Assembly: GCF_964204865.1 (NCBI RefSeq)
Contig: NC_135250.1
Location: forward strand, 10,974,001 to 11,038,000
DNA length: 64,000 bases
DNA from: Styela clava
Taxonomy: Eukaryota
Direction: 5' to 3'
A program made the position numbers and the translations under genes. Of the stretch, positions 7,257 to 34,695 are shown one piece after another. A model generated the notes under the pieces. It was not told the origin of the DNA. It saw only the letters and a program-made list of their open reading frames with translations, and did not search any database. How positions within the stretch are numbered: position 1 is the first letter of the stretch; each line of letters opens with the position of its first letter.

Positions 7257-9169
7257 ATGCAAATTTACTGCCGATGTCCGACACGGGTGAAATTCACTTA
7301 TTTATTTTGCTTTTCCTTGACTCTATGCCTTGTTCTCAAGATAGCAATTTTTATGTCTTCCCCTCCCGTAACCAAACAAAACATCGCAAAATATTTCGAG
7401 GCAACTTCAAACAAACTGACATTGCTTGCACACAAATACAACTGCGAAGCAATTGACGAGTTTCTCAAAAACGGCACAACCCCTAGAGAGCATTTGGAAT
7501 TTCTTGCGAAACCCTGGAGAATAAATGTATCTGCTTCTCCAGCTAGTTTATTTCACAACAATAACGTTGGTAAGTTGTTCATTTTGTCACGATTGTCTTT
7601 TACTGTATATTTGATAACATATAAAGAGGCACTTATTTGTATTTACAGTTGAATTATGGTCATCTATCGCTGTAGTCAAATCAAGTATTATGAACGAAAA
7701 TCGCAGGTTTGCTATTCGTGAAACATGGGGGAAATTCAAATTTATTGATGGAGTTAGACTCGAAACTGTATTTATCTTGGGAACTACTGATGATATTCAG
7801 CTACAAAAAGAAATAATAGAAGAAAATGGAATATACGGTGATATACTTCAGGTTGATCTACCAGACACCAAAGAGTAAGTATGAACACTGGGTATTCTAA
7901 TCGAATAAAAGCAAGTGTGTCTCAACGGAGCCATACAGAATAGTTGCAGTTAATCAATCATAATATTGATGTACATTACTAATTCACAAGCAATGACGTA
8001 TGGTAATAATCATTCGGTATAGAAAATTTGCAGCCGATGGTTTAGGACTTAATGGAATCATTTGCACATGGGTTGTATTATTGAATCAAGTATTGGCGAA
8101 GTCATACAATGATAACTCGTAACTTGAGAATCTTGAAACATATTTCAAGAGAGAAAACAAATAGCAAAGCGTCCTAGATTACTGAAACATTTGAGTCATA
8201 CACAATCATACACAAACAGAAGTTTAGGCTTTAAATAAATTTATTTTATTTTTAAGTTGTGTTTTTAGTCTTTAGCTTAATTAACTCTTTATGTTAAAAA
8301 AAAAACGTAATTAAGGCGGCTTCGGAGAAAAGGTTGTAGCATACAAACCAAACTAGGTGCTTATTTATTGGGTGAAGATTCGAAGAAATATTAAAAATAG
8401 GCTTGGCAACTGCAATCTTCTTCAATAACATATTTTTGAACATCCGTGCGCTCTGACAATGTGTGTACTCTGAAGACGTTAATGATATCATGCTTCCTAT
8501 CATTTTCTTAGAAATGTTCCTGCAAAGACGTTGGCGGGAATGAGATGGATTTCTCAAAATATCCCGGACACCTGGCTTTACTCTTCAGTAGACGATGACT
8601 TCATCCTACATCCACCAAATTTCATCCGATACGTTGAAAGCGTGAAACGAGATAGAATTTCCAAAACTCTACCAATCATGTGTATTTACGCTTACAGAAA
8701 AGCCGAGGAGATTAATAGAAAAAGAGGCAGTCCTTGGTATATTTCACCAGAGCAGTATGCAGCAAAGAATTGGCCCCCGTACTGTCGCGGTGGTTGGTAT
8801 ACAATGCCAACGGAAACCGCTTCAAAATTGTATGAAATATCAAGAACCACTCCGTTTCTAAAACTTGATGATGTTTGGATAACAGGTATAATAAGGCTTA
8901 TCATGAACGATCGTGAAAATAAACCGGTTCCTCCAGGTAGCCATGTCTCCGAGTACGGTATTACTTTTGCTCCCCTGGCGGATAGAACAAACAATCAATT
9001 GTATTATAATCAATATGAGAATGATTTAGGCAAGGTGATAGTCAGCCATACTTGGTCCGGTAATTATGGCCTGTTTGCACATAGTATTGAAAATGATATA
9101 GAAAATATTTGGAGTAAGTGGGAGACAGCGGTATTGGAGAGAATGAAATATTATATTCAAGCGATTTAA
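7257..9169 (+). CDS. GT31 beta-1,3-galactosyltransferase-like protein, paralog 1 (3 coding exons, ~398 aa)
   Basis: Exons 7257-7569, 7649-7874 and 8512-9169 are joined by GT-AG introns in phase (1197 nt). N-terminal type II TM helix; motifs 'RRFAIRETWG', 'VFILG', 'EENGIYGDILQ', DxD 'SSVDDDF', 'WPPYCRGGWY' and 'LDDVWITG' are typical of the Galactosyl_T/B3GALT family. Exact orthologue and donor sugar are not assignable. Confidence 0.93.
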
Positions 9170-12515: not shown

Positions 12516-13870
<1,355 letters not shown>

Positions 13871-14917
13871 TTCTGAGATATTAATGGTACGGTATAAATT
13901 GAGCAAATGTGCCAATATAATTTGATTCTTGAACATTGGTCTATTGGGTGGGAATTTAGAACAAAACAATTTTGTTGGGAACTAAATTGACGATAAAACT
14001 TACATGCGATTCCAGGAGAAATTATATGTTCTCAATATATTATAAAGCCTGATTTTTGCTATGTTTTACAGTCATTTAATCTGATTGTTCATATTATTCG
14101 GGTATGGAAATTGATTAATTGTGAGCCATCCATAAACGTCTTCTATCATATGCCCCAGCAGTAACTCAGTCCCATGTCATCATGTGTGTTATTTAAATGG
14201 ATGAAAACCGATATTAGTCGTGTTCCAACGACCCCACCACATTTATTGTGCTTGACTATTTACTGCTATTCATTTAACAAAACATATCAGTACAAAATTT
14301 GCCAAAATTGTTTTCACTTTTTTAATATGAAAAATATTATTATGATTATGTTGCCATTATTCTATTTTCTTTATTACTAATACCTATCTGTCATGCATGC
14401 AGGTGTTAATCAAGACTATTGCTCGTATTGTTATTGTAAATAAATTTAAAAAAAACTAGTGAGTTCTAGGAGTTAGATGGCAGATAGAAATAAAAATATG
14501 ACAAAGATTATAAAACAAAAATGATGGAATAAATTTGTAAGGTTGGAATCATTCTATTCATACGGGATTGGGAAAATACTTTGTCAATTAACATGAAAAA
14601 CGAGAATACCTACATTTGAGAATTTTAAAAAATTGATTTGGACAGGCGTTCGTTGAGAAATTTGTTCTGGTTTCATCTTAACTGTTATGCCGAGAAAAGG
14701 CAGGACGAATAAAACATCGTTACTATATTATGAAAGGTATTTTTTGAAAGAAAATTTTATTTCAAATTTCATACCATAAAACGTAGTGCCAATTTTCGTA
14801 GAATGATAATATGATCTATATGCATTTCACGAGAATTTGATACAATCAAAATCACATGCGCTCACTTGGAAAACTATACAATCTGCTTACAGTGAAGAAA
14901 CGAGAAATCCTAAATCA

Positions 14918-15160
14918 AATACAGGAGAGCAATGCTCAATTATAATGACATGGAATCCAAATGAAATATTTTACCAACAACAAAAGCAACAATTTTTATC
15001 CACCGAGAATTTCAAAGCAATTGGTTCAGTAGTCGGAGAAAAAAACGATTTTTTCACAACAACAAGTCTATAGAATACCAGCAACAACACCAGAACGATC
15101 CATAGGTCTATGTCGTGTCCAACAAGCGAGCAATGCTTAGGTTCATTTCGTGTCCAATAA
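14918..15160 (+). mobile_element. Helentron/DINE-like non-autonomous element(s); related pieces at ~128-245, 18349-18860, 19325-19382 + 23535-23755, 23901-23952 (-) and 31380-31530
   Basis: One end is caag(a/c)gagcNatgctc (a small hairpin), the core is 'aatttcaaagc(g/a)attgg(t)ccagta..gatttttcacaa' followed by an (aac)n-rich tract, and the other end is 'aacgatccataggtc..tcgtgtccaa'. No TSD is evident. The superfamily is inferred from structure. Confidence 0.55.
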
Positions 15161-16487
15161 TATCTATGCGAAATACTAAAGAATGGAATCACGTTATCAT
15201 CAAGTTATCGTCAATGAGGGTTTTACCGGCACAAGTGCCACCAACTAACAACGAACAATTCAAGGTATGCTATCAATTTAGTTGGTTTGAAACTAATCTT
15301 TTTTCTATGACCTTTCACTGTTGGATTCCAATGCGAATGATGCAGGGCTGCTGTTGTAGTGAATGTAGTCGATTATCAATTATGTTAGTTGGAATAATTT
15401 TGACATCAGTCAGATCGAAGGCTACAGAGATTCGTTTGTGTTAGTATGCAGCAAGACTTTTGAATCAATTAGCTCGAAAATTCAACGTAGCCTATTATAT
15501 AAATGCAAAAAACATACATAAAATGTTAACATTTTATGTAGGCTATTTTAACATGCAAATAAACTCCAGATATAATTTACTCACTCACGCACTGACAGTT
15601 TTAGTCAAGATTTATGCAGTTCACATTCAAAATACAAATATTAATATGATTAAGTACAAATGTGAAAATTAGAAACTCTGTAGTAACTCGTAAATTATGA
15701 ACACGACACAAGCACATATTACACAGGTATATGCATTGCATAGTCAATAGTATAGGTTTCTGATACTATTACTTACGAATTACGATTGGCGTAAGATCGT
15801 TTTATTAACACCGGAATTTAGTTAAGATTTTATGAGACATGCTAAATAAATAAATAAGAGGTTACAAATATGAAATCATATACAATCCACGATATGTCGA
15901 AGTGGTATTTCATATTCAATGGAAGGAAGGAAGCATGTGTCATGCCTGATATTTAGCAAATAATATAAACAACTGTATGAATTTCGAGTATAATAGTTAG
16001 ATGTTTTCAATCGGACATTTAATTTGACTGCGTCCTTATACTGTAACAACCCGTATGCATCGAAGTTTATTTTCTACAAGACCTTTCGCTATAGTGAGTT
16101 ACAGGTTTAGGTTGAATCTCGAATGCTACATCGTCTATTAAAACAGCAAAGAAATATTTACAAGAGTTGAATGTCTATACTGTATACCTTATTTATGAAT
16201 GGTTAATTACTAACACTTTAATCCAGGTTATAGATTTGAAATCATACTTTAGTTAAACGATGCTAATCTAAGGATATTACTTAACCTGCCCTTCAGCTTC
16301 ACGTTAATGAAGATTCTTTAGAAAACTCACCATCAAACAAAATTTTAGTTATAGCTTACGAACTTCAGTTAAGTTGGTAGCATAGAAATTGTGCCCTTTC
16401 TTTGTGATAACCAGCGTTGCCATCAAACAGTGTTGTTGTAAATCTCTAATAAAATATGTTTCAGAGTATAAAAATATTCATAAAAGT

Positions 16488-17630
16488 ATGTATCGCATCA
16501 ATGTCGTCCGTTCTCGGATTTTTGGTTGCCATGGTCGGATTTATGCACGAGGTCAGTCTAACTAAATGAGGTCATTACCAAAGTCATTTTAAGCCCAGAA
16601 TTATACCAAAACGTTGTAAAAGCCTACATAATTAAAATCGCGTGTGATATGGTCCAAAAAATCAAGCAGAATCTGACCTGAGAAGTGTTTAAAAAAAAAC
16701 TGACCCGATTTACAACTTTGCGATGCATAAGATACAATAACTGGACATAATTTATGCGCTGATTTCAAGTCATTTAACTTGAGTTTAATAATATTGTAAT
16801 AACTAAAATTTATATCATTTTATCCTACAATTGGCGCAGTTTTCAAGATTACAAAATGTTGTCGACTTATTTGAAGAGCCAAATATTAGTATGAAATATA
16901 CAATATATATGTTATCATAAAGTTATAAATAATAATAATATAATGACCAAAATAAATGATGATACGCGACATAGGCAAATATTTTCAGCTGATAACCTTA
17001 AATGTGTTTCATAGTTGTTAAATACGTGAGTGTAGCATGGAGATAGATTAGTAGATATGACGTTTGCTTTTCTTTTTCAAAGCACTGACGATTGCAACGA
17101 ACCAACCAACAATTACAGCGAATAAACCAACGTTTGCTGCGCATAAACCAGAGTTTGCTTCATATCTACCAACGTTTGCTTCATATCAACCAACAGTCGC
17201 TTCAAATCTACCGAAGTTTGCCTCACATCAACCAAAGTTTGAACCAAATCTACCAAAGTTTGCTTCACATCAACCAAAGTTTGAACCAAATCAACCAAAG
17301 TTTGCTTCACATCAACCAAAGTTTGAACCAAATCAACCAAAGTTTGCTTCATATCAACCAAAGTTTGAATCGAATTTACCAGAGTTTGCTTCACATCAAC
17401 CAAAGTTTGAACCAAATCCACCAAAATTTGCTTCACATCAACCAAAGTTTGAACCAAATCAACCAAAGTTTGCTTCAAATCAACCGACGTTTGCTTCAAA
17501 TCAACCAATAGTTTCCCAAAATCTACCAACGATTGCTCAACATAAACCAAAGTTTGCTTCAAATCAACCAACAGTTGCTCAAAATCAACCAACGTTCGCT
17601 CAAAATCAACCAAAGTTTTCTCAGAATTAA
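16488..17630 (+). CDS. Heptad-repeat protein copy A (diverged; ~203 aa, 25 heptads such as ASHQPKF/EPNQPKF); possibly decaying
   Basis: Exon 1 16488-16551 (MYRINVVRSRIFGCHGRIYAR, donor cgag|gtcagt) and exon 2 17083-17630 (acceptor tctttttcaaag|ca) join through a phase-1 intron, homologous to copy C. The ancestral ATG is lost and the signal core is polar. The stop is a CAA>TAA change 13 codons before the ancestral stop at 17667-17669. Confidence 0.6.
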
Positions 17631-17669
17631 CCAATATTTGCACCAGACCAACCAACGCTTAAACCATAA
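17090..17669 (+). repeat. 21-bp coding tandem repeat with a 42-bp higher-order unit in the centre
   Basis: Alternating 'gcttcacatcaaccaaagttt' and 'gaaccaaatcaaccaaagttt' units. Confidence 0.95.
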
Positions 17670-18861
17670 CAAGGATAACATAAATAACATGACATAAATA
17701 TTCCAGATTGTATGATAAAAGATTCCAGAGCACCATGTTTAAACTATATCGATATACTTTATTCGTGGTCACGTAAAATCTGTTATTTTACAAAGTGACT
17801 ATTATTATCCAGGAATATATATCAAGGAATTTGATATTAATCGAAATTGTTGTGGTTACATTATATTTTTTATCTGTAAGCATAAGTTAGAGTTAAACTA
17901 AAGGTATCAAACTCATTGAAATGTATTCCCGAGTTCATGAATATTATACTACTCGAAGCACAGTCAAGTCACAATCAGACACATTTATGTTTTTCATCAA
18001 ATATATTGGAGGTTGAATCGGATTTAATCAGATTACAGTACTAATCAGAATTTGGCTTGTAATGCGTTCGTTAAAATATACAGCTATACGATATGTATGT
18101 GGAATCAGGTTATGTGCGTGTCTTGACTTTTATCAGTCAGAAGTATAAGATTTCAGAAAAAAAAATCGCCACCACCTTTCTTGTGCTAATTTTTTTGCTG
18201 CTGTTTATTTGACAAAACATTTCAGACCAAAATTTGTTTTACGTTTTCAATATGATTATTACCAATATATTATAATCAAGTTAATATTGTATCTGTCATG
18301 TATGCAGGATTAATCAAGACTATTGAGCTTATTATAAAAATAAATTTAAGCAAGAGAGCCATGCTCGAATATGTCGACAAGGTGGGCAACACAAAATATT
18401 TTATCTCATCAATTCCCTGAAAATCATACACGGTAAATTACCAGTAGCCGTATCGGGAGGCGAAGAATTCGACTACCCAGACAACTCATCAGAAACAACT
18501 CGACTACTCAGGGTACTGACGAAAATCCATTCTTCATGATTAGGTTTCAACGTGAATTAAAACACCAACTGATCCGAGTCACTTATGTATCATCAGACCA
18601 GATCCCACAGTCTACCGTTCCTAATAAAAAGTTCCCACTTTCGCTAAGCACGAGATTCGCCGACTTTCGCACAGCATAATGTCCGCTGATAAATTCCAAT
18701 GACGTCATAGCACACAAAGAAAAAATATATATCTTTCACCACTGGAAATTTCAAAGCGATTGGTCCAGTAATTAGAAATAAAAGTGATTTTTCCTAACGA
18801 TAGAAACAAAAATATCATGAACAACAACTTAATAACAAAACGAGGACCTCCTGTCCCGAAG

Positions 18862-18984
18862 AAGTGGGACACGTGGTACAAGTGGGACACGTGGTACAAG
18901 TGGCACACGTGGTACAAGTGGGAAACGGGGTACAAGTGGTACACGTGGGACAAGTGGGGCACGTGGTACAAGTGGGACACGTGG
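18862..18984. repeat. 18-bp minisatellite (aagtgggacacgtggtac) x ~7
   Basis: Directly visible, with 9-bp substructure. Confidence 0.93.
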
Positions 18985-19842
18985 AATACGACATTTTGAA
19001 GACACCGCCAAAAACAACTGATGAGTTGTGGAAATTAGGTGATAGAAGGGAAGTAAGGGGAAGATAAAATTCCGAAACAAAAATGAAAGTACAAATTTTG
19101 CACGGGATGGATAAATTCTGTTATAAAAAGCATGCGTTTGTAAAACAATTACTGAATACAATTTATACGCAGATTTCATTTCATTGGTTTTGAGTTTATT
19201 TACGGATTTAATAATATTACAACAACTAAAATCTATATCATCTTTTTACAATTTACGCAGTTCTGAAGATTGCAAAAAGTTAACTTATCGACTTATTTGA
19301 AGAGCCACATTTTAATGTTATCATACAAGCGAGCGATGCTCAAATATATGGATACGAACATCAAAACGAAGTAGAACCACAGAGATATATAAATAGAGTG
19401 CGCTTCTTTCTCGTTTCCGCGAGATTATTTGAAGGCTCTCTCGTTTTGACGATAGATTTCCAACTTTTCCGAAGCGCGTAATGCATTTCTTATGGGATTT
19501 GGCAGAAATCAATCATTTGCGTCGATTTTTCTCACATATTCGCCTGATCTTGATTCGTTTCTCATTATGTATCAAACGCTAGTATATCCCAGCTCACCAT
19601 ACGGTGCTAATTTTGGCAGTTTTATAAATTTGTGAAAGTCGTGGTTAATAATATGGCCAACGTATCAGTCAAAGGCGAACAAAAACGACCACAAAACATT
19701 AGTCAAGATGGCTTATTCGAATCGCTTCCCCATTTGTATATGGCCTTATTTTATCGCCTTACGCATTTTGCGTAACGATCTCAATATCATTGCGTGGCCT
19801 GGTTCCATAACACCCTAGCTGTACATGTAAATAGAACTAAAG

Positions 19843-20899
19843 AGCGCTCCTCAAGTGTATGTACTAATATGGAGGTAACTAATATTGTTCGCCTACTCTA
19901 CACCAATTTGTGTAAAGCAGGGATGCACGACCTTTTTGCTATTGGAGGCCACATTGCATTTATTTGTATTCGATACGGCCGCAAGGGGGCTGAAGAGCAC
20001 GCAGAACGCGCGCGATTTTTTTTTGGCTTTTATGACGCCATAACCGCGTATTTGAACCATGCGAGGTGCAGTCTGCCCACCTATAAAGTATGTAGGACTA
20101 CTTGGAAGTATAATATTCGCATTTTAAACGGATTTTTTTTCGGTGGACCTATTCTTGAGCAGATATATTGCAACAAGTTGCATAATGGTTGCACAATTTT
20201 GAAAAAAATTGAAAGTCGGGGATGGGAAGATGGGCGGTCGCTCCCATTTTCTTGTCCCCAAAAGTATAATAAAATGTCAAATATTTTAATGAATTTTTTC
20301 TATGAAAGTGTGCAAAGCACTGTAGCAATTCAATGACTCCCTTGGTCTTGCACGTGGACAGATAAACTTGCAAAGTCAGGTAACTGGCTGGATACCATCA
20401 ACCTTAGTTTAGACTCCAGCTTGACGTCTAACAATCTGGTTCGGTACTCATTTATCAGGTACGTCATTCTTGAAACGTTGCTTCGCATGTGTAAGTACTT
20501 CCAAAAAGAACGAGAGTTTTTCTTGCCAATTCTTGTAGCACTGGATATTCAACTGTGCTTTTAACGTGTCCAGCAGATTTTTCTCGTCTTTAAACTTCTG
20601 CACATGCTGTCCATCATGCTTTTTGCACCAGCATTGTCGCCAAATCCTATATTTTGAACTTTTTTTTTTCATTGAATTTTGTGTATGGAAGGCCGCATTA
20701 TTTTGTCACGACGGCCGCATACGGCCGTGCGCCGCAGGTTGTGCACCGTTGGTGTAAACGGAAGGAAACCATGGGCACAGGATATATTCACTTGGCTAAC
20801 ACACACACAATTCCCGAACTCGTAAAAGAACTAGGATAAAGAAAGTCGGAATAAAGTTATGGCCTAACCTCAATCTGGAACACAGACTACGGGAGTACC
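19843..20899 (-). mobile_element. Merlin-like MITE interrupted by a Buster/Charlie hAT element
   Basis: Ends agcgctcc...gggagtacc with 8-bp TSD aactaaag/aactaaat. Both halves are homologous to the intact copy at 25631-25853. Confidence 0.8.
19918..20751 (-). mobile_element. Non-autonomous Buster/Charlie-type hAT element carrying a transposase C-terminal remnant
   Basis: TIRs cagggatgcacgacc / ggttgtgcaccgttg and TSD gtgtaaag/gtgtaaac. Minus strand ~20570-20330 reads EYPVLQELARKTLVLFGSTYTCEATF/RMTYLINEYRTRLLD..LRL..DQGSH* (GTF2IRD2-like dimerisation domain, one frameshift). Confidence 0.85.
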
Positions 20900-21048
20900 A
20901 ACTAAATTGCGTTTCGCCCTCTGTCGAAGACTTGGGGATGAAATCTTCCCCGTGGAGGTTATTGCATTTTTATGATATTATTTGAAAACAATTGTTTCCA
21001 CTTTCTCACTTCTTTCCGGCTTCGCATTTCTTAGCCTTAGACCTCATA

Positions 21049-23121
21049 ATGAATAAGGTTGATGCACTACTCGCAGCTGCCGCTGGAACAAAAATTAGAG
21101 GTACAACGTCTTGGGCCTTATCAACCAAAAAATTGTTCACTGAAACAGTCCCATGACGGAGGAAAGCGTCGGCGTACATTCTGCGCAGAAACTTGGTATA
21201 AAAAACACGAATGGTTGTGTTACAGCGAGGACAAAAATGCACTTTTTTGTTTTTATTGCCTACTTTTTGCTATCGCCCGTGACTCACGTTGGTGTAAATT
21301 TGGTTTTAGAGATCTTAAACATCTTTCCGAGCGTGCCAGGGATCATCAATCTTCTATGGAGCATCTGGACAATGCAGTAAAATACCGAACATTCGGAAAT
21401 GTTAATATTGCAGCACAGTTGGATGAAGGACGCGCGGTTTCTATTCGTCGGCACAACCAAAACGTCGAGAAAAACCGCCATGTTCTCGGTCGATTGATAG
21501 ATGTTTTGAAGTTCATTGGTTGTCACGAGCTGTCCCTCCGTGGGCACGATGAACGGGCTGGCTCTTCTAATAGAGGGGTATTTTTGGATATGGTGGAATA
21601 CATCGCATCCCTAGATACAGTATTGAGAGATCATCTTGATGCCGAAACTGTTTCGAAAGGGACATCTAAGGATATCCAAAATGATTTGCTCGACTCAATG
21701 TATAAAATTTATTTACAAGACTTGGCTCTGGAAATTGAGAATTGCCAGTTCCTTTCGATTCAGTCTGACGAGACAACTGACATCACGTGCGTTTCCCAAC
21801 TGGCTGTGATTTTTCGGTTTGTGAAAGATGGTAAACCTACCGAGAGATTTCACAGCTTTGTACCAATCGTTGATCGCACGGCTTGCGGGATATCGGCTGT
21901 ACTGAAAGAAGTGTTACAGCCTTACAACGCGAAGTCAAAATTGATAGCCCAAACTTATGACGGCGCGGCAGTCATGAGTGGGTCGAAACAAGGTGTTCAA
22001 GTTTATATAAAAGAGGATTTTCCTCATGCGCATTTTTTACATTGTTATGCACACCAATTTAACCTCGTTATCAAAAATATGTGTCTTGATACCCCTCTTG
22101 TCCGTATATTTTTTGCAAATGTTTCGGGGTTTTCTTCATTTTTTTCCGTTTCGCCGAAGCGCTCTGACCTCCTTCGCCAGATATGTAGCCGCCGTCTCCC
22201 AGCTTGTGCACCAACACGTTGGAACTTCCTATCACGCGTGGTGCAGGGCGTGTCCGAAATTAGGTCTGAGCTCATTGAGAGTTTCAATGGCATTCAGAGC
22301 TCTCCGGTTTGGGACGAACGCTCTGTGAGGGAGGCGGCAGGTCTAAAGCGTCTGCTAGAAGATGGTGAGTTTTCATTTTTTCTCGCTTTTTTCTCCACAA
22401 TATTCTATCACGTGGATGTATTATACGGCGCATTGCAGTCAAGGCTAATGGATGGAGCGTCTGTGCAGTCGTGTATTTCAGACTTCTGCGATGCTGTATC
22501 TCGTATCCGGGAAACATAAAAATACGACGACACATGGAGTGCTTCTTTACGCCGCGGGCAAACAACGCAGCTTTTGATTTTGTCTGCAAAGGAATGCTGT
22601 GACATTCTGGTGAATCAGATATGCGATCGTCTGCGCACTGAACACCTTGCCGCGTTCTCTTTGATAAACCCAAAAATTTTTCAAAATTTGCACGTCAATT
22701 TCCCATCCATTTGTTGGCTACTGTCTCCAAATTTTACCCCATGATAAACGTGGGTAAATTGGAAAATGAATTGCGATGTATATACACCAATCAAACTTTT
22801 TTAAAAATCACATCAACTTGCGCGCTCTATGAGTTCCTCATAGATAACACTCTAGTAACTACCTTTGCGGCGTCTGCAAAATTTCTGGACATCATTTTGA
22901 CGACGCCTATTTCTTCCGCCGACGCAGAGCGAACATTCAGCACGCTGAAGCGTATTAAAACGTATCTCAGAAACACAATGAAGCAAGATAGATTAAATTC
23001 CTTGGCTGTTTTATCCATTCACAAAGACGTTATTTCTGGGATGAATGACTTTAATCAGCGCGTTATTGAGCATTTTGCTTCCAAGAAACCGCGGCGTGTT
23101 GGATATATGTTCAAGCAGTAG
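21049..23121 (+). pseudogene. hAT transposase (ZMYM1-like, TTF zinc finger + DUF4371-type), disrupted
   Basis: Motifs 'WLCYS..LFCFYC', 'SDETTD', 'QTYDGAAVMSG', 'HCYAH', 'TRW' and 'AERTFSTLKRIKTYLRNTM'. In-frame TAA at 22517-22519, a frameshift near 22672 and a probable further frameshift just after the ATG at 21049. Confidence 0.92.
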
Positions 23122-23954
23122 AAGTCTAGCAGCATATATATCTATGAATGAGCGACGCATGTCCTTATCTTTGCATTAACTTTCCTTTCTTCATAGTAAC
23201 GTTTTAAACCTTATTTTAGGTTTTGTCTGCTTTCCCGAAGTTTCTGTTAATATGTCATTGTATTTATATGGGTAAATATTGCTTTCCTTTTGAAAGAGGT
23301 CCCAAAATAAACTATGTCTATATCTATTAATCCCTTGACTTGGACTGGTTTTAAAGACACTTTCTTATCGTTAAAAATTGTCGCTTTTGCCGATTGGTTG
23401 TTACCGATGGAATGGTTTTTATACTCATAAAATGATGGGAGAACTCACAGCGCTCATCCTGTCTCCGTAGATGGGGGTGACTTGGTCCCGCAGTAGCTTG
23501 CCCCGGTTGTCAAAATGACCACGCGCCGCCACTGGGTCACAGTACACTATCGAAACCGCAGTCCCGCACGACTAACGCAAACCAAGAACTGCCACAATGT
23601 ACGCACTTTTTAAGGACAGCACACAAAAAACGATCTCTATAGTCCAGTGATTGGAGAGGAAAGAGACTTTTTCACAATAATAAGAAGAAAAATACTAACA
23701 ACAAAAATAAGAACAATAACATAATAACAAAACGACGCATGTGTACACTTCCTGTTAAATAATAATATAATAACCATAATAAGTGACGGTACACAACACA
23801 GGAAAATGCTGTTAGATAATTGGCTTGAATGTGCTCAATAGATGTTTAACTCGTGAATGTAGCGCTATGATAGAGTAGTAAACATGCATCACGTTTACTT
23901 TATTGACACGAAATGGACCTATGGATCGTTTTGTTGTTATGTTGTTGTTGTTCA

Positions 23955-24040
23955 AATTCAATCAATCAAATTTTGCACGAAATCAATCAACGTTTGCTCC
24001 AAATTACCCACAGTTTGCTTTAAATCAAACAACGTTTGTT
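23955..24040 (+). pseudogene. Heptad-repeat gene copy B remnant (~4 degenerate heptads)
   Basis: Translates FNQSNFARNQSTFAPNYPQFALNQTTFV. Intron-homologous sequence lies at 19140-19320 and 23757-23900, split by an insertion. The splice acceptor is replaced by a repeat fragment at 23901-23952. Confidence 0.75.
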
Positions 24041-25630
24041 GATGTTAACAGTTTTGTTCTTGTGTCTTCTGAATTGACAGCTAGATCAATGGCATGAATA
24101 GGATAATATTATAATTATGCTTATTATAATCAATATTTTATTATAATTTGTTATATTATAATAAAAATTGAGCTTGATATTTTTCGAAGAAAATTCAATT
24201 TGAAAAATATTCAATTTTTTTTATATTTGTACATATTTATACCACAAAAAGTATTTCCCATTTTCGTAGAATTATAATATGGTACATATGTATTTCATCT
24301 TTCATGAGAAATCTGCTTCAATCAAAATCACATGCGATCACATAGAAAACCACAAAATTTACAGTGAAGTAACGAGCAATTCTTGTAACCTTGAATCCAT
24401 TCAATAAATTTTGTAAAAAGTCAGGTTAACGAGCAAGTAACCTTGTCTTCCAAAAAGACAATAGTGAAATCTGGTAACTGGTAACTAACTGGACTTGGCG
24501 CGCGGTGACATCGATCCCGAAATTGTACGCACGAAAATTGTGAACGAAACTCATTATCTGATCACTCGCCTGCGACAGCAGTCTGGGTCCGAGGAGCATA
24601 TTTAATTACAGTTGCCTTGCCCTACTTACCTTTTTGTAGACGGAGCTTCCGAATCAGCGTAAAATTTGTATTGTATAACAATAATCGATTGCACATTTGT
24701 TTGGGTATCATGAAACATGTGATGAACAGGCAATGGCCCACAAAATTTCACGTCGCTATGAGGTAATAGTACGTCAAGATGTATCGTACATCGTGCATAT
24801 ACATAATTGTCTTCCAGTCCCCACTGCTCTAGCTTAAAGTAGGCACAGCTTGATTGATACTTTCACGATCTTTTTTTGTAGCGCACAAATTGTGTGTAAG
24901 TTATAGAATAAAAAAAACAATATAAAAAAATTTCTATAAAATATTTCAATACAATGAAATTGAAGATCCCCACGTTGAAAGCTGCCCAACACAGTATATA
25001 TATTCCATTCGATATGCCTTCATGGCCCCTAATAAGAACGCCGAAGGTTGGTGAAATTGCCCCGCAGATCATTGAAAACACAAAGTTTATATTTATGTAT
25101 GGTGAAGAGTTGAAGATATTATTATTGAGTACAAACGGAAAAGAGGAAACTCTGTACGCTAGGAACTCCGGGCACGAAAAATGCACATACATATTACATA
25201 ATATGCCTATATGTATAGTTAAAATTATGGGTTTTTGATAAAAATTCATTTTATTACCGCGGTATGCTTTAAATAAAAGGTTAAAAACATGAAGTCTAAT
25301 AAGTCCACATCATGTCAAAGTCCACCATCAAATACCCAATATAGAAGGAAGGAAGCACATAAGCCAGTATCCACATAATGCATTCCAATAAAATCACTGT
25401 GTTATGCCCGACCTTTAGCACTTAGTAGAAACAACTGAAATGAATTTCATAAAATATATATAAATAGACGTTTTTAATCGGGCATTGACTTAGATTGTCT
25501 GCGTCCTTATGCTGCAACATCTTACATTTATAGGTATGTATATATATTTGATAGATCTTAGGCTATAGTGGGTTTCAGATATAGATTTCAACTCGAATGC
25601 TTTATTTTCCACAAAATTAGCAGTTAAATC

Positions 25631-25853
25631 GGTACTCCCGTAGTCTGTGTACCAGGTTAGGGTTAGGGCATAATTTTTTCCCGATTTTCCTTATTTTAGT
25701 TCTATTACGTCTTACGAAGTTTGAGTATTGTCTGTGTTAGCCAAGTGAATATACCCCTGCTCATAAGTTTCAGTCCCTTTACACAACTTGATGAAAGGTA
25801 TAGGCGAACAAAATTAGTTACCTTCATATTGGTACACACACTTCTGGAGCGCC
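25631..25853 (+). mobile_element. Merlin-like MITE
   Basis: Ends ggtactcc/ggagcgcc with TSD gttaaatc/gttgaatc. Absent from the paralogous site in unit D (~29255). Confidence 0.85.
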
Positions 25854-26121
25854 GTTGAATCTTTACAAAAATTCGGTGAATATATATTTTGTTTTTATAA
25901 AGAGTTAATCGCTAACATTCTAATCGGTGTCGTTTATTTAATGGAATCATAATTTATATGGACGCGACTTATTTAAAAATATTTTGCATTAAAACTTGTG
26001 ACCTTAACTCAAGTTAGTAGTATGAAAACTGAGTTTCTTCCTCGTGATACCCAGCATTGCGAGTAAATCTGTGGTTAAATGTGTTACAGCTAACAAAGAT
26101 ATTCAGAAACAAGCAACTACC

Positions 26122-26970
26122 ATGAAAAGTATATATTACATCAACGCCGTTTGCTTGCTGATTCTCAGTTACTCTGGTCAGATTAACGGACGAGGTGAGA
26201 GTAATTGAGTAGGAGCCATTATGTATTTGAAGTTATCCCCAAACCCAAAGTATTTCAAAACGTTGCAAATTTCGAACGGATTAAATTTTAAAGTGAGGTG
26301 ATCTGAAAAAATTCCAGCCTAATTCGGATCGAGATGTGTAAGAGAACTGGTACCTAGCTTATAACTTTACGATTATCCATTGACAATTACTGATATTATT
26401 TCACGCGCTGTTTTCAATCCATGTCTTTGTTATTTTTATGGCAACTAAATTTTTTTTTAACTGATGAGGTAAAAAGTAAAGAGCCAAATTAGGGAATACG
26501 TTATGATATGTCACTTTTTTAGCCTAATAGGATACAATTAAATTAATATCTGTTTAATACCTGAGCGTACCGTGAAGCAATGAGTTCTCATTGCGTGAAG
26601 AGAGCGAAAATATAACCTTTGTTTTTTTCTTTTCAAAGCACTATTCGCACCAAATCAACCAATCTATGCACCAAATCAACCAACATTCACACCTAATCAG
26701 CCAACGTTCACACCAATTCAACCAACATTTGCACGAAATCAACCAACCTTTGCATCAAATCAACCAACATTCGCACCAAATCAGCCACCGTTTACACCAA
26801 TTCAACTAACATTTGCACCAAATCAGCCAACCTTTGTACCAAATCAAACAACATTCGCACCAAATCAACCAACGTTTACACCAAATCAACCAACATTTGC
26901 ACCAAATCAACCAACCTTTGCACCAAATCAACCAACATTCGGACCAAATCAACCAACATTTGCTCCATAA
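26122..26970 (+). CDS. Secreted heptad-repeat protein copy C (intact; 134 aa = signal peptide + 15x APNQPTF)
   Basis: Exon 1 26122-26194 encodes MKSIYYINAVCLLILSYSGQINGR (signal-peptide-like; donor cgag|gtgaga). Exon 2 26639-26970 (acceptor tttttttcttttcaaag|ca) is in phase and open to TAA. Much of the unit-to-unit variation is synonymous in this frame (aca/acg/acc, ttt/ttc, caa/cag, cca/cct). Confidence 0.8.
26647..26967 (+). repeat. 21-bp tandem repeat, 15 units (gcaccaaatcaaccaacattt)
   Basis: Directly visible periodicity. Confidence 0.95.
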
Positions 26971-29549
26971 CAAGGAAGATTTAGACAACATGATATATCA
27001 TTCGAGGGCATCATATTTATCCTATAAAAATATGTTTTCTGTGTCACCCCAAATATGTATTTTTCTTCAGTGACTATTATTATTCAAGAATATCAAAGAA
27101 AATGGGCGCTGATACATACTATTTCAACAGTTAGCTCCATATTTTTTGGTTACATTGTATTTCTTCGCCGCCATCATAAATCAGTGTTAAATTTATATAT
27201 ATATCATAAGTTCTGCAAACTCATATTGATAATTTATTTCCGTTGGTTCTTGTTCAGACAATAATGCGTCGTAGTTGGGATTATATTGTCAAAATAGTGA
27301 AAATTTTATAACTTGGAACGAAGCCAATAAAAATGTTAACCAGAATTGTACACTATAATCGTTAATCGAACTTCCTATGGGATTCCCATTGGAATACAAT
27401 TTTTTATTAAATTTTTTAAAATTTAGGTTCAGTGGCCATTAACTAGCACTCTATGTACAAAGAGACATGTCAAGTTTCATCCGAATCCGAAAGGTGGAAT
27501 TATGCTCGCGCTCTAGAAACTAAACGCAGTAGTCCACTTTGCCCAAGGGAAATACAAATATGTGCTCCCAATTGCCTTGCGTTTCCCGCTTGTCCCATGC
27601 GTCCACTTGTACCGTGGAAAATGCGAATGTGTTCTGTCCTATCCCATCACATGATACGTTTCCCATGGTTTAGCCTGGTTACCTGGATATCAAGTTGGAA
27701 TCGTGTCAACTTGAGAGTGCTTGGGAAATAGAAATGATGCGTTTGCCGGAAGTATTTTATATTTGAGCTTAGCCGAGTGGGTGACGGGTATTAGCATCTT
27801 CAATTAATTAATTCATGCTAAAGAATTTGCGATTGATATTTTTCGAAGAAAATTCAATTTGAAAAATATTCAAATTTTCATATACATATACCACAAGAAG
27901 TATTCCCCATTTTGTAGAATAATAATATGGTATATATATACATGTGTAATTCACGAAAAATTTGCTCCAACCAAATTTACATAGAAAACCACAAAATTTA
28001 CAGCAAAGAAACGTGCGATTCTTGTAACCAGGAATTCATTCAACAAACCAAACCAAGTCTCCCAAAAACACAATAGTGAAATCTCGTGAATCTCATTCAC
28101 AAAGGATTTATCGTAAAGACTTGGCGTGCGGTCACATGCGGTCCCCGTAATCGTACGCACGAAGGTTGTGAACGAAACTCATTATCTGGTCACTCATTCG
28201 TATCACTCGCCTGCGTCAGTAGTCTGGGGCCGAGGAGCATATTTAACTACAGTTGCCTTGCCCTACTTAATTTTTTGTAGTTGGAGCTTTCGAATCAGCG
28301 TAAAATTAGTATTGTATACCAATAACCGATTGCGCATTTGTTTAAGTATCATGAAACATGTGATTAACAGGCAATGGCACCGCAAAGTTGTCAAATTTCA
28401 TGTCGCTATGATATAATAGTACGTTAAGATGCATCGTGCTGCATATTCATAATTGTCTTCAAGTTCCCACTGCTCTAGCTCAGAGTAGGCACGACTGGGT
28501 TGACACTTCGACGATATTTTTTTGTAGCGCGCAAATTGTGTGTAAGTCATGGAATCAAAAACAATATAAAGAAAATTTCTAACAAATATTTCACTACAAT
28601 GAAATCGAAGATCCCCACGTTGAGAGCTGCCCAACACAGTAAATATATATATTCCATTTGATATGCCTCCATGGCCCCCTAATAAGAACGCCGAAGGTTG
28701 GTGAAATTGCCCCGCAGATCATTGAAAACACAAAATTTATATTTATGTATGGTGAAGAGTTGAAGTTATTGTTATTGAGTACAAATGGGAAAAATTGGAA
28801 ACTATGTATGCTAGGAACTCCGGGCACGGCAAATGCACACACATGTTACATAATATGCCTATATATATGTATAGTTGAAATTATGGGTTATTTATATAAA
28901 ATCATTTTATTTACGAGGTATGCTTTAATAGGTTAAAAACATGATATTTCATATAGTCGACATCATGTCAAAGTCCACCATCAAATATCCAATACAGAAG
29001 GAAGGAAAGCCATTATCCACATAATGCATTCCAATAAAATCACAGTGTTATGCCCGACCTTTAGCACTCAGTAGGAACAACTGACATGAATTTCACAAAA
29101 TATAAATAGACGTTTTTGATCAGGCATGACTCGGATTGTCCGCGTCCTCATGCTGTAACATCTCACATTCGTGGGTCTATGTATGACAACTTTTAGGCTA
29201 TTGTGGGTTTCACATTTAGATTTGAACTCGAATGCTGTATTTTCTACAAAATTAGCAATCTTTAAAAGAATTCAGTGATTAAATATATTTCATATTTATG
29301 AGGAATAATCAGTAAAACTCTAATGTCTCTATGTCGTATGACAACTAAATTTTTTAACCGATGAAGCAAAAAGTTGCCAATTTATTTAAAGAGCCAAATT
29401 AGGGTATGAAATAAATCATGATATGTCACTTTTTTAGCCTAATAGGATGAAATTAAGTTAATATCTGTTCAATACCTGAGCTTACCTTGAGGCAATGAAT
29501 CCGCATTGCGTGAAGAGAGCGAATATATGACTTTTTTTTCTTTTCAAAG

Positions 29550-29965
29550 CACTATTTGCACCAAATCAACCAACGTTAGCACCAAATCAACCAACGTTTG
29601 CTCCAAATCAACCAACGTTTGCACCAAATCAACCAACGTTTGCTCCAAATCAACCAACGTTTGCACCAAATCAACCAACGTTTGCTCCAAATCAATTAAC
29701 GTTTGCTCCAAATCAACCAACGTTTGCACCAAATCAACCAACGTTTGCAACAAATAAACCAACGTTTGCACCAAATCAACCAACGTTTGCGCCAAATCAA
29801 CCAATGTTTGCACCAAATCAACCAACGTTTGCACCAAATCAACCAACGTTTGCACCAATTCAACCAACGTTTACACCAATTCAACCAACATTTGCACCAA
29901 ATCAACCAACCTTTGCACCAAATCAACCAACATTCGGACCAAATCAACCAACATTTGCTCCATAA
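29550..29965 (+). pseudogene. Heptad-repeat gene copy D: intact repeat exon (19x APNQPTF) whose own signal exon is deleted; pseudogene or alternative terminal exon
   Basis: The acceptor, open frame, stop and 3' flank are conserved with copy C. About 500 bp corresponding to ~25925-26420 (including exon 1) is absent at ~29325. Confidence 0.65.
29558..29962 (+). repeat. 21-bp tandem repeat, 19 units (gcaccaaatcaaccaacgttt)
   Basis: Directly visible and very homogeneous. Confidence 0.95.
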
Positions 29966-32446
29966 CAAGGAAGATTTAGACAACATAATATATCGTTCGA
30001 GAGCATTATATCTATCCTATAAAAATATGTTTTCTGTGTCACGCCAAATATGTATTTTTTTTTTCAGTGACTACTTATATTCAAGAATATCAAAAAAATG
30101 GGCACTAATACATACTTTTCAACAGTTAGCTTCATGTTCTTTTGGTCACATTGTATTTCTTTGCCGCCATCGTAAATCAGTGTTAAACCTTTACCATAAG
30201 TTCTGCAAACTTATATGGATAATTTACTTCTGTTGGTTCTTGTTCAGACAATAATGCGTCGTTGTTAAGATTATATTGTCAAAATAATACAAATTTTATT
30301 ACTTGGAACGAAGTCAATAAAAATGTTAACCAGAGCTGTACGCTATAATCGTTTTTCGATTTTTTTTTAGATTAGGCGTTCGCTGAACTATTCAATTTGA
30401 CTTGTAAAACCGTCGTTGGTGTCTAATAATTCAGCGGGTTCTACACGAAATTCTTTGAATGAGTCCCAACTCCCAATTACTTATAGTCCCAGGGAGTTGG
30501 ATCAAACGGACGTTTCCCATGGTTCAGCCTGGTTATCCGGATATCAAGTTGGAATCGTGACAACTTAAAGAGTGCTTGGGAAATAGAAATTATGTGTTAG
30601 GTTGTCGGAAGTCTTTCATATTTGAGCTTAGCCGAGTGGGTGACGGGTCTTAAATCTTCAATTGATACAAATTTGGTAAATGAACGAGAAATGAGAATCC
30701 TCTGCATTTAGTCGAAGATTTCGTTTATAACTGAACGATCTTAAAGACGCTAATTCAATCACGCCCAATAAATTGCAAAAGTAGTCGTTTTTTTTGTAGA
30801 TTACACTAGCATGATATATTCACGAACGCTGTCTGCCTAGATATAGCAAAATAAAATAGAGAAACACAACTTAATTGTATTCTATCTTAATTGTATTCTA
30901 AGATACTACTGGATGATAAAGCAAAAGAAGAAAAACTGAATATATATGGAAATTCTCATGATAGAAAGAATAAACAGTGTAGAAGCAAATAAAAATTTGA
31001 AGATCTGTTCACAATCTCATTGGAAACCGAAACGGAACAAAAAATATTTATATAATCGTTTGCACATTTTCAGCAGTATAGTGCTTCCGCCGAAGAAATA
31101 GAAGCTTAATTAAGTTTGCGATGATCACAGCCCTGAAACAGGAGATCTGAAAACGGGCTATGTATCAGATTATTAGTTTGCCTATCTGACTTAAGGGAAC
31201 ATTCAAAATAATAAGAAGACGAGCTACTACGCTTGCAAGTTAACTAAACACGAATGAACATATTGAATTCGACATTAGAATAATTAGAAAGAATTCTACG
31301 AATCCTGTTGGTGAAAATTTTTTTTTTTTTACAAAGCATTCCAACGAAGTAAAGGTCCCATAATATATTCATATGCTGCTTTCGTATTAGGTACATCCAT
31401 ATTTCAGGTACAAAAAATCTGAAATGGATCATTACTCTCGGAGAAAAGAGATGTTTTTAACAGCAAAAAACTTCATCCTAACGACAACAATAACTTAGCA
31501 AAAGGATCATAGGTTCGTGTCCATCAATACAGCAGAACGTTAGTAGCCCGTTATCACAGTGCTTTAAAGTTGTGCTTATTGAGATAACTAAAGTAGAATA
31601 TTCATTGTGTAAAATAATAAAAAGCCTGTGCAGTATAACAAAATGCCATTACCTATAAAATAGTAAAAAATACAATCGTTGACTTCACAAATTGAATGAA
31701 TGCAAGTATAAGTCTCGTTAAATGAGTTTATCACACCACAGTGTCAAAATGATGTTTTATAGTCAAAATTATATGCTTGCAAAAGAGTGTAGATCGGAGT
31801 AAATTCAAATTGTTAAGGCATGTTTGAATGGGCATTATTTCGGTAAGATTACCCAGCACAAGTTTTTTAAACGAAATACGAAACTATAAAATCTATAGAT
31901 TGTGTTGTAATCTAGCTAAGCTATAAATCCAGAAATATGAGTTGGGATGCAATTGTGCAATGTTGCCTTGTAACAACTGAAGGAAATCCAGCAGCATGCC
32001 CAGATTGTAAAAACAAACGGCTACAGGAAGCATTGAATGATTCAAGCTGTAATCAAGACAGGAGAACAAAGCAGGGAAATGACGAATACGAGACTAGAAT
32101 GAAATTACTACGAAACTAACTTACCTAGAACAATAGCAAACCAATCTGGGATACATGATATAGAAAATAACAGATAAAATTATCCCGCATTATTTTAGAA
32201 ACTAAATTCCACAGACGCATATTACTAATACTAGTTAATCTGTTTCACATGAATGATTCAATTTTTTTTTCTTAAATCACGTATATTGAACGAGCGATTT
32301 CAAAAATATTTTCTTAAAAATGATCAAATTTGCATATCGAAGTTTTAAAAACAAATTACAAATAAACAGATATATGATTATACAGTATTTTCAAACGAAA
32401 TATTTTGAACAAATCGAATCTCATATGCGACAAGAATAATAGAATT

Positions 32447-34695
32447 TCAATCAGAACTACCAAATGTAACAAAATACTTCATTCTTTCCATGAAAGAGTT
32501 CTCCCATTTGCTCCATATATTGCGAATATCATCATCAATATTATGCCGAAGCCAGCCGTAATTTCCAGACCAGGTGTGAGTGACAATAACTTTGTTTAAA
32601 TCGTCTTCAAATTTATTCCAGTATAACTCATGGTTCGTTCTGTTCGCAAGAGGAGCATAAGTAATACCCTCTTCTGAAAGAAGACTACCGGGAGGAATAC
32701 TTTTGCCTTCTTGGTTGTTCACCATAACTCTCATTATCCCGGTAACCCAGACATCGTCAAGATATAAAAAGGGAGTTGTTCTCGATACTTCATACAACTT
32801 TGACGTTGTTGCAATTGGCATTGTGTACCAACCGCCACGGCAATATGGGGGCCAATATTTTGCGGGATATTGTTCAAGCGAAACGAACCAAGGACTCTCG
32901 GGTTGTCTATCGGGTTCTTCAGCTTGTCTATAACCATAGATACACATGATAGGAAGTGGATGAGAAGGTATTCTACGTCGCATTGTCTCTATATATCTAA
33001 GGAAATTTGGGAGGTGAATCGCAAAGTCGTCATCTGCTGATGAATATAACCAATTTTGCGGTAAATAAGTCGAGGCCCATCTCATTCCAGCCAGAAGTTT
33101 GAGAGGAACGTTTCTGTGTTGAAAAACATTGAAAGTTTTACCTAGTTTGAGGATAATAAATATTTAATTGAATTATTAGAAAAGGTTAATACTACTTTTT
33201 TAACATAAAATGAAAGAATTTGGCGCCTTCAGTAAAACATTTAATTTACAATTTAGAATCTTACGAATATCATAAACTTAAGATCTGAGGCTTCGACTGA
33301 AATAGAAATAAAAAAGCTCCATTCGATATACATTTATTCTATGTTAATTGCTTTACTTTCTTTACAAACTACTGAAGACCATTTTCATTAATTAAATACA
33401 ACTTACTCTTTGGTGTCAGGTAGATCAACCTGAAGTATATCGCCATATATTTGATTTTCTTCCTTTATATCACTTTGCAGATGAATATTATTAGTAGTTC
33501 CCAAGATAAAAACAGTTTCAAGTCTGACTCCATCAATAAATTTGAATTTACCCCACGTTTCACGGATGACATTTCGTCGTTTTTTATTCAATAAACTCGA
33601 CTTTACTACGGTGATAGATGACCAGCTTTCAACTGCAATAAAACAGAGAAGTCCATATAAATGCAGTCTGGAAATGATCTCTAAATATGATAAAACTGCT
33701 AAATATCAGTTGGTATACAGCAGCTTATTATTCGAACGATAATATTTATTGTATGTAAAACATAAGTTAGCGATATAAATTCAGTTAAGCATGCCAATTG
33801 TCAGTACAATAACTAGATAACTCTTAGAATACATTATACTAAATTCAAAAGCTAATTTAATCTACAAATGACCAGAGAAATTGAATAGTATGATAAGGTT
33901 TTATTTTGTATTCCACAAAAATACTTTTAATTTTAAACGGTACTCTTGAGGATATTACATCACTCAGAAATTATGTATATAATAGCGAACGAAACGCCAA
34001 ATAGGCTTCAAAGCATCAGCATTTTAAGATAAAGGATTGTATGTAATAAATGGTATTTGTGACAAATCTGTACAACACTCTATTTATAAAAACATTGTTT
34101 CAAAAAGATATTTACGCAAATTCTACATAACATGCGTGGTGATATTACCATTATACAAATATTTGTAATAGATTTTGCATATTCAAAACGGAATTATGTG
34201 GTTTTACTTCTATAAACTGCACATTTACATAAAGTTCTTTTTTTGATTTTGTCTCAATTTTTAAAAACTCAATTTCCGATAGCATATATTTCAAATTTTC
34301 ATTTCAAGCTAAATCACGTTGTATAAAACCGATATATTTTTCTCACCATTGATTTTGTCTTTAAATAAACCTGCTCTAGACGATGAAATATTTACATTCC
34401 AAGGTGAAACAAGAATTTTAATGTGTTTTCTTTGTGTCGTTCCATTTTTAATAAATCCATCAATTTCATTGTATTTCTTATGGTGTGCTACTAATCTGGG
34501 ATGTTCATATTGAAGCTTCATAAGTTTTCTTCCATTTGTGCCATTCGAATGCAAATGGAGCACCACAAACGCTAACTTAAACATAACACAGGCAATTATG
34601 AATATGCACATTAATATAATACTCCGCCTTTTGTTCCCATCGCGATACCATTTTAAAGACTTCACAAAGGTTATGCACTTATTCCTAACTTGCAT
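32447..34695 (-). CDS. GT31 beta-1,3-galactosyltransferase-like protein, paralog 2 (3 coding exons, ~413 aa)
   Basis: Exons 34695-34347, 33632-33407 and 33113-32447 are in phase (1242 nt), with the same intron positions/phases and 226-nt middle exon as paralog 1. Motifs 'SSADDDF', 'WPPYCRGGWY' and 'LDDVWVTG'. Confidence 0.93.

Follow-up and report, generated by a model that had tools for sequence, protein, structure and literature searches.

What does a set of 21-bp minisatellites in the genome of the ascidian Styela clava encode, if anything, and how many genes does it make up? The arrays lie in a 64-kb stretch of contig NC_135250.1 (assembly GCF_964204865.1, positions 10,974,001 to 11,038,000; hereafter the window, to which all coordinates refer unless a contig is named), and the original prediction, made from the letters alone, had read them as four gene units, A to D, of an orphan family of secreted (APNQPTF)n heptad-repeat proteins. 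We find that the locus is transcribed and spliced, and we favor, with a probability of roughly 0.6, the reading that it represents a young ascidian gene cluster, the active core of which is a single unit with one first exon and two alternative repeat exons, 2C and 2D, yielding a secreted, extended component of an extracellular matrix or mucus.

Conserved landmarks surround three of the arrays. Tandem Repeats Finder delimits four arrays of 21-bp units on the plus strand, namely, array A at 17118-17641 (25 units, with a 42-bp superperiod), array B at 23960-24038 (3.8 units), array C at 26643-26967 (15.5 units), and array D at 29555-29962 (19.4 units). As had been proposed, the arrays of A, C, and D stand behind one conserved acceptor and are closed by one conserved stop: the acceptor context TTTCAAAG followed by CACT occurs exactly 3 times in the window, at 17075, 26631, and 29542, and the terminal motif CCATAACAAGGA also exactly 3 times, at 17664, 26965, and 29960, all on the plus strand and none on the minus strand (the window holds no runs of N). 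Copy B has neither landmark. Read in register, the C and D repeats spell APNQPTF and close variants, and the repeat exon of copy A (17083..17669, +) spells 26 heptads of a Lys-rich variant, in which ASHQPKF and EPNQPKF alternate as a 14-residue superunit (ASHQPKF-EPNQPKF) with degenerate units at either end. For copy A, 2 of the earlier statements need amendment. The family stop is present at 17667-17669, but an in-frame TAA (17628-17630) precedes it by 13 codons, and the repeat, said to be hidden from the track of open reading frames (ORFs), is readable in a plain ORF list as an ORF of 188 aa.

Evidence of transcription comes from sequencing runs. Twelve runs of one organism were compared by their word content over 26000-30400, where the proportion of words present is 15-21% in runs X1-X5 and 68-83% in X6-X9, and the contigs of X1 and X2 (study P1), X5 (study P2), and X6 (study P3) were placed on 24800-30700. 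X6 has contigs in all 30 bins of this region, as expected of a DNA run. Besides a high-copy repeat at 25.6-25.9 kb, the contigs of X1, X2, and X5 are almost confined to 3 blocks, 26088-26194, 26637-27334, and 29548-30333, and none of these runs has any contig in the bin 26376-26572, which lies in the interior of an intron. With contigs almost only on exons and an empty intron interior, X1, X2, and X5 behave as RNA; we treat them as probable RNA runs, a guess as to their nature, and as contigs they leave depth, isoform ratios, strand, and exact ends unreadable.

The 3 blocks correspond to one first exon and 2 terminal exons. Exon 1, common to C and D (26088..26194, +), carries an ATG at 26122 and a donor GT at 26195, so that its 73 coding nucleotides, from the ATG to 26194, amount to 24 codons plus 1 nt and leave the frame in phase 1. 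Terminal exon 2C (26639..27345, +) comprises 15 heptads, the stop TAA at 26968-26970, and a 3' untranslated region (UTR) of ~365 nt with AATAAA at 27326-27331, and terminal exon 2D (29550..30335, +) comprises 19 heptads, the stop TAA at 29963-29965, and AATAAA at 30316-30321; the poly(A) signal is conserved at both, with contigs ending at 27334 and 30333, respectively. The intron of the C isoform (26195..26638, +), over the interior of which the RNA-type runs have no contigs, is covered by the DNA run X6.

Exon 1 is spliced to 2D. The joint 26194/29550 (row 26192 to 29548, 'cut +2', in the table of joints) has GT..AG ends, skips 3355 nt, and is found in X1, X2, and X5 and absent from X6; record 21 of X5 crosses it without a mismatch, matching exon 1 over 105 letters and the D exon over 70. 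The junction is in phase 1, with G plus CA giving Ala, followed by LFAPNQ. Thus, the spliced transcript that the original prediction called for was recovered in 3 RNA-type runs, although in the form of exon 1 joined to 2D, and the 26194/26639 joint within copy C, which is not among the joints listed, is hinted at by record 4 of X1, where 21 unplaced letters precede 26637, as many as exon 1 contributes to its joint with 2D in X1 and X2. We consider the junction between exon 1 and 2C likely, and the coordinates agree with the 73-nt exon, phase-1 splice, and 134-aa product proposed for copy C, since exon 1 plus the sequence from 26639 onward gives 402 nt, i.e., 134 codons. With RNA-type contigs on the exons, a GT..AG joint, and a frame that stays in phase across it, the locus is a transcribed, spliced, protein-coding one, as had been supposed.

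The same joint changes the gene count. Because D has no exon 1 and its repeat exon is spliced to the first exon of C, C and D constitute one transcription unit with 2 alternative terminal exons, and, since the duplicated exon is itself a minisatellite, the 2 isoforms differ only in repeat number and unit variants. According to the mechanism we propose, the unit would extend from 26088 to ~30335 on the plus strand and possess a single 5' exon with the start codon and a signal-like sequence, which would be spliced in phase 1 to either 2C or 2D, each of them a coding minisatellite of 21-bp units equipped with a separate stop and poly(A) signal. D would descend from a tandem duplication of C, after which it lost its exon 1, and would be reached when transcription continues beyond the poly(A) site of C. 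Upon removal of the signal peptide, the products would be nearly pure (APNQPTF)n, serving as a Cys-free, non-cross-linked component of the extracellular matrix or mucus.

The history of the cluster can be traced by comparing the copies. C and D are 89% identical over an upstream block (24165-25622 versus 27824-29257, by self-comparison and realignment), 90% over the 3' part of the intron (26437-26638 versus 29337-29549), 92% over the last 8 array units, and 91% over the 3' UTR to the poly(A) site. The C segment 25622-26437 (~815 bp), which contains exon 1 together with ~240 bp from the start of the intron, as well as the promoter region and a ~230-bp dispersed element, is replaced in D by ~80 unrelated bp, and it is for this reason that D has no exon 1; the D copy of the upstream block, followed by these ~80 bp (27824..29337, +), is intronic in the D isoform. 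The flanks of copy A are ~70-77% identical to those of C, and an exon-1 homologue (16465..16551, +) is kept at the matching position, with the donor ACGAG/GT conserved. An 18-bp deletion in it removes the ATG used in C, and the next in-frame ATG, at 16488, opens a peptide of 21 aa with Arg-Ser-Arg in place of the hydrophobic core (9-residue hydropathy maximum of 0.89 versus 2.82 for exon 1 of C); a hydrophobic peptide encoded in another frame is unable to join the repeat frame. The loss of the ATG and of the hydrophobic core, together with the early TAA, would make copy A either a pseudogene or a diverged non-secreted paralogue. Copy B (23960..24038, +) consists of its 3.8 units, preceded by a fragment (23758-23901) homologous to the 3' end of the intron of A. 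Judged from sequence, copy A is an older, Lys-rich paralogue of C and D with a damaged exon 1, and copy B a dead fragment. Duplication and decay within the cluster, as originally envisaged, are therefore evident in the damaged exon 1 of A, the remnant B, and the loss of exon 1 from D, yet the count of 4 gene units does not stand: the cluster is better described as one active unit (C/D), one decaying older paralogue (A), and one fossil (B).

The predicted products of the active unit are 134 aa (15 heptads, through 2C) and 162 aa (19 heptads, through 2D) long. Exon 1 probably encodes a signal-peptide-like sequence of 24 residues, with an MKS start (Lys2), a hydrophobic core of 13-15 residues reaching a 9-residue Kyte-Doolittle maximum of 2.82, and a c-region of small residues with Ser at -3 and -1 (S-Y-S/G). 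In each heptad, Pro accounts for ~2 residues and Ala, Asn, Gln, Thr, and Phe for 1 apiece. Neither Cys nor dibasic sites occur in the mature parts of C and D, which are almost uncharged, and the earlier description of copy C as 15 heptads free of Cys and dibasic sites proves accurate. Pro recurs at positions i and i+3 of every heptad, which favors an extended, polyproline-II-rich chain, and AlphaFold2 folds the D repeat exon with a predicted local distance difference test (pLDDT) score of 57, a predicted template modeling (pTM) score of 0.13, and no secondary structure; we infer that the repeat chain is intrinsically extended or disordered. Every Thr is flanked by Pro at -1 and +3, a favorable setting for mucin-type O-GalNAc transferases. 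The product is likely a secreted, extended, possibly O-glycosylated, non-cross-linked matrix or mucus protein, for which the tunic, the endostyle mucus, the egg coat, and the larval adhesive are candidate sites.

Is the heptad frame translated into a peptide that selection maintains? Of the 6 frames, it is the sole one that is stop-free in both C and D, in line with the earlier remark that the other plus-strand frames run into stops in at least 1 copy. Among the repeat units, the ratio of nonsynonymous to synonymous differences per site (pN/pS) is 0.37 for the C units, 0.33 for the D units, and 0.32 when pooled, compared to 0.95-1.85 in the other 2 plus-strand frames, where the values set against the pooled one are 1.1 or higher, and 32 of the 56 minor unit variants fall at third positions. 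Synonymous variants are common among the units, and nonsynonymous ones are mostly singletons. The claim that unit differences are synonymous in this frame only is thus sustained by pN/pS but not by a count of distinct variants, and, because the units are copies of one another, the synonymous excess is suggestive rather than independent evidence. The stronger arguments for coding are of a different kind: the splice is in phase; the heptad register runs through 34 units with neither frameshift nor stop; the acceptor, phase, register, and stop context are common to A and C/D although their flanks have diverged; and the frame also remains open in a variant allele represented in X5.

Several observations weigh against a selected matrix or mucus product. 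When each distinct unit variant is counted once, 7 of 22 are synonymous versus 24% expected (P = 0.26). The array identity of C and D is no higher than that of their introns and UTRs (90-91%), the 2 copies being, at ~10% divergence throughout, too recent for any extra coding conservation to be visible, and conservation is not demonstrable because no orthologue is known; the case for purifying selection on the repeat is accordingly weak. The consensus heptad, with 1 Thr, no Ser, and 2 Pro per 7 residues, is high in Pro, but its Ser+Thr content of 14% lies far below that of classical mucin domains rich in proline, threonine, and serine (PTS domains), which are dense enough for clustered O-glycans. 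Finally, the list of joints does not include that from exon 1 to 2C, 71 further joints being unlisted.

The count of distinct variants and the equal identity of coding and non-coding parts of C and D would suit a transcribed but functionless proto-gene, that is, a minisatellite that lies beside a fortuitous signal-like exon, is spliced and polyadenylated, and gives rise to a peptide that is not selected and may not accumulate. The same explanation would accommodate the lack of relatives in any library searched, the rapid decay within the cluster, and an array composition that appears to differ between individuals. Less easily explained in this way are the landmarks kept between A and C/D across flanks of ~70-77% identity, the unbroken frame of 34 units and of the variant allele, the distribution of common synonymous and mostly singleton nonsynonymous variants, and expression in 2 independent studies, and we consider a proto-gene unlikely, even if it is the alternative that fares best.

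A second explanation concerns only the architecture. An unequal exchange between C and D could have produced a structural-variant haplotype in which exon 1 lies directly 5' of the D exon, and the exon 1 to 2D joint would then reflect ordinary splicing on that haplotype rather than alternative splicing of the reference arrangement. X5 lends itself to this interpretation: it has no contig on 2C, and its record 23 (29621-30333) attaches the D 3' UTR to units in the order found in C (TPIQPTF, ARNQPTF, ASNQPTF, APNQPPF, TPIQLTF...). Such a variant array could have arisen by exchange between the arrays or gene conversion, could be an ancestral allele, could reflect a recent homogenizing expansion of the reference D array, or could be a contig chimera. 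However, in X1 and X2 alike, contigs on 2C occur together with the joint of exon 1 to 2D, the start of the D array in record 21 of X5 is of the D type without a mismatch, and no such deletion joint is present in the DNA run X6, which derives from a different sample. Furthermore, low-depth RNA contigs occur in the spacer between C and D, at 27614-27809 in X5 and 27814-28062 in X1, where the primary transcript would read through from C into D. A structural variant is thus quite an improbable source of the joint, and alternative terminal exons in a single transcription unit remain our preferred explanation.

Other functions can be imagined for a secreted repeat. A soluble effector, either an immune or antimicrobial Pro-rich peptide or a gamete-recognition protein, might owe its repeat turnover to an arms race; proteins of these classes are typically small, secreted Pro-rich repeats with turnover in copy number and allelic variation of their arrays, and copy A has gained Lys and His. 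Proline-rich antimicrobial peptides, however, are Arg/Lys-rich, whereas the C and D repeats are nearly uncharged, and there are no dibasic processing sites, which makes such an effector very unlikely. The structural, adhesive, or immune role suggested at the outset, along with the comparison to prolamins and glues, is to be read as analogy only. More specific, and no better than a long shot, is a geometric conjecture that (APNQPTF)n is a tunicate-specific, fold-less linear protein coating the cellulose of the tunic, with the repeat number tuning coverage. To our knowledge, tunicates are the only animals that make cellulose. A polyproline-II chain rises by ~3.1 Å per residue, and the conjecture stems from the spacing of Phe every ~22 Å, close to 2 cellobiose repeats (~10.3 Å each), and from hydrogen bonds that the flanking Asn, Gln, and Thr could form with the glucan.

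How far does the family extend beyond this locus? The whole genome (377 Mb, 380 contigs) was searched, with the repeat exons serving as protein queries and for folding, and exon 1 compared as DNA and scored for hydropathy. The array DNA matches the 4 places in the window and nowhere else, and the same holds, apart from weak matches, for the repeat proteins of D and A; at the DNA level, exon 1 of C matches the genome only at its own position. The possibility raised earlier, that the same 21-mer array might recur genome-wide inside a transposon, is therefore not borne out. The weak matches are to the C-terminal domain (CTD) of RNA polymerase II on contig C8 and to an unrelated 21-bp satellite on contigs C6 and C66. 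The latter (C6:23275408-23319705 and C66:5680-5865) has the unit AAAATTTGCACCCGACACCCG and reads as FAPDTRK heptads; it was rejected as a relative, as its unit differs and it sits in a dispersed repeat with its own conserved flanks, none of which is in common with the repeat locus. A non-coding minisatellite carried by a transposon, for which the ~230-bp high-copy element just upstream and a hAT transposon between A and B might speak, is next to impossible given the match of array DNA and protein to this locus alone, the uniqueness of exon 1, the unrelated unit and flanks of the sole other 21-bp satellite found, and the existence of spliced, polyadenylated transcripts, and we regard it as refuted.

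In the protein collections searched, no relatives were found either. At E<=0.01, the repeat exons of A, C, and D have no match in Pfam, and those of D and A, used as queries in word-indexed searches of 5.8 billion proteins, gave none there. Since the PKD2-like protein encoded in the neighborhood, in the same genome, is present in that collection and the repeat protein is absent, gene callers seem to have missed the repeat gene. An exhaustive phmmer search against 1.84 billion representatives returned 1489 matches, which were set aside as unrelated period-7 repeats (RNA polymerase II CTD, PT linkers, etc.), none with the APNQPTF unit or the architecture; the nearest unit, (PTFALNV)n in the metagenome protein P0195 (source name 'affecting Mg2+/Co2+ transport'), has unrelated termini. 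In the PDB sequence search, the RPB1 CTD alone was matched, and the ESM Atlas yielded nothing at 0.9 or above. Paper searches returned nothing for the heptad strings and nothing relevant on ascidian tunic or repeat proteins. The statement that the proteins belong to no known family thus agrees with the Pfam, word-index, and HMMER searches. 'Orphan' here means having no detectable relative in protein libraries, the genomes of sister species lying outside the DNA-level search, and the gene cluster is apparently young and lineage-restricted.

Although without detectable relatives, the locus resembles several known systems. Closest in kind are mucin-type or PTS secreted proteins, such as the insect salivary glue proteins (Sgs) and small mucin-like proteins, with which it shares a putative signal peptide followed by short Pro/Thr tandem repeats, a coding minisatellite contained in one exon and variable in number and composition, tandem gene clusters, and predicted disorder. 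Unlike in these proteins, Thr occurs once per heptad (14%), Ser is almost absent, and Thr is matched in abundance by each of Asn, Gln, and Phe; nor are there Cys-rich terminal domains or any sequence relationship that we could find. Cereal prolamins of the gliadin PQQPF type also combine a signal peptide with Pro/Gln/Phe-rich repeats of ~7 residues and form tandem clusters with many pseudogenes. However, prolamins are plant seed storage proteins, most classes of which have conserved Cys domains, whereas here Asn and Thr are prominent, Gln is 1 residue in 7, and the mature parts of C and D lack Cys. The Pfam prolamin and gliadin models do not match the A, C, or D repeat exons, and the resemblance is compositional only.

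The CTD of RNA polymerase II, with its YSPTSPS repeat, is the best-scoring match in every HMMER search and has in common with the heptads a period-7 skeleton (aromatic-x-P-x-x-P-x) and disorder. It is, however, nuclear and forms the C-terminus of a subunit of ~1,700-2,000 residues, compared to a signal-like exon plus repeats in a product of 134-162 aa. As a candidate relative it was rejected, the 23-30% identity deriving from periodicity and the genome having its own RPB1 elsewhere (on C8). As for gene architecture, alternative 3'-terminal exons created by tandem duplication provide a parallel, in that read-through, together with splicing that competes with polyadenylation, brings into use a downstream copy that lacks a first exon and has a poly(A) signal of its own. 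What sets the present locus apart is that the duplicated exon is a hypervariable coding minisatellite.

The 5' end of the transcript raises a further question. Three exon-1 contigs (records 21, 3, and 13) stop matching the genome at 26088/26089, right after ttacAG, and carry 17, 27, and 50 unplaced 5' letters, respectively; an acceptor-like TTTCAG is conserved at the exon-1 homologue of copy A. In Ciona, the transcripts of about half of the genes acquire a spliced leader of 16 nt, which is added at unpaired acceptors (PMC1488885). A trans-spliced leader joined at 26088 is a natural reading of the unplaced letters, and a cis-spliced 5' non-coding exon is equally possible. The 16-nt leader of Ciona followed by GT was not found in this assembly, and the 2 exact occurrences of the 16-mer are not followed by GT. 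We also note a tandem array at C3:24847565-24961794, with at least 70 units spaced by 0.5-1.9 kb, in which a 16-mer with 1 mismatch to the Ciona leader lies in a small hairpin ~45 nt 5' of a tRNA-like start (by eye). This array has no GT donor and was rejected as evidence of a spliced leader.

The surroundings of the cluster include mobile elements and other genes. The ~230-bp dispersed element (25625..25860), which resembles a short interspersed element (SINE) or a miniature inverted-repeat transposable element (MITE), is located ~230 bp upstream of exon 1, outside the coding unit, and is absent from the corresponding position in A. The genome contains at least 4404 candidate copies of it, at 84-89% identity, and it is present in vast excess in DNA contigs as well as RNA contigs, where its summed depth is in the range of 10^5; part of the element recurs in inverted orientation at 19844-20910. 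The hAT-type transposon between A and B (19794-23121) encodes DUF4371 and hAT dimerisation domains at 21059-23121 (Pfam), with the transposase frame split into a 486-aa ORF containing DUF4371 and a separate 136-aa ORF containing the hAT dimerisation domain; no clear terminal inverted repeats were found for it. Just 3' of copy A, at 18862-18984, is an 18-bp minisatellite with the unit AAGTGGGACACGTGGTAC (6.8 copies, 88% matches).

Among the flanking genes, the PKD2-like gene (56788-59301, +) is intronless and encodes a protein of 837 aa with PKD_channel, Polycystin_dom, and EF-hand domains, which is 78% identical to its counterpart in Phallusia mammillata, 76% to that in Ciona intestinalis, and 75% to that in Clavelina lepadiformis. 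Two 212-aa ORFs with a Galactosyl_T domain (beta-1,3-galactosyltransferase), at 8531-9169 (+) and 32447-33085 (-), flank the cluster, and any link between them and glycosylation of the repeat protein is pure speculation. An ORF at 12525-13524 (+), the start of which is signal-like, contains a collagen triple-helix repeat (Pfam Collagen), and the next ORF is C-type-lectin-like by eye, with no Pfam match; the two may form a collectin-like gene. An exon at 46087-46554 (-) encodes part of an RNA 3'-terminal phosphate cyclase (Pfam RTC), and Rfam gave no matches in the window at the gathering threshold.

In kind, the proteins of this locus are lineage-restricted secreted tandem-repeat proteins; what is new is the repeat unit and the exon-sharing architecture. 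The locus does not by itself open a long-standing question, but it represents an expressed gene apparently overlooked by standard gene and protein collections, and, for genome annotation, it argues for searching for coding minisatellites beside signal-peptide mini-exons. It also presents birth-and-death evolution mid-way, with a duplicate that has been deprived of its first exon surviving on that of its neighbor, so that duplication becomes isoform diversity. Should the tunic, the feeding mucus, or the larval glue turn out to contain the product as a component, (APNQPTF)n would rank as a new low-complexity constituent of tunicate extracellular materials.

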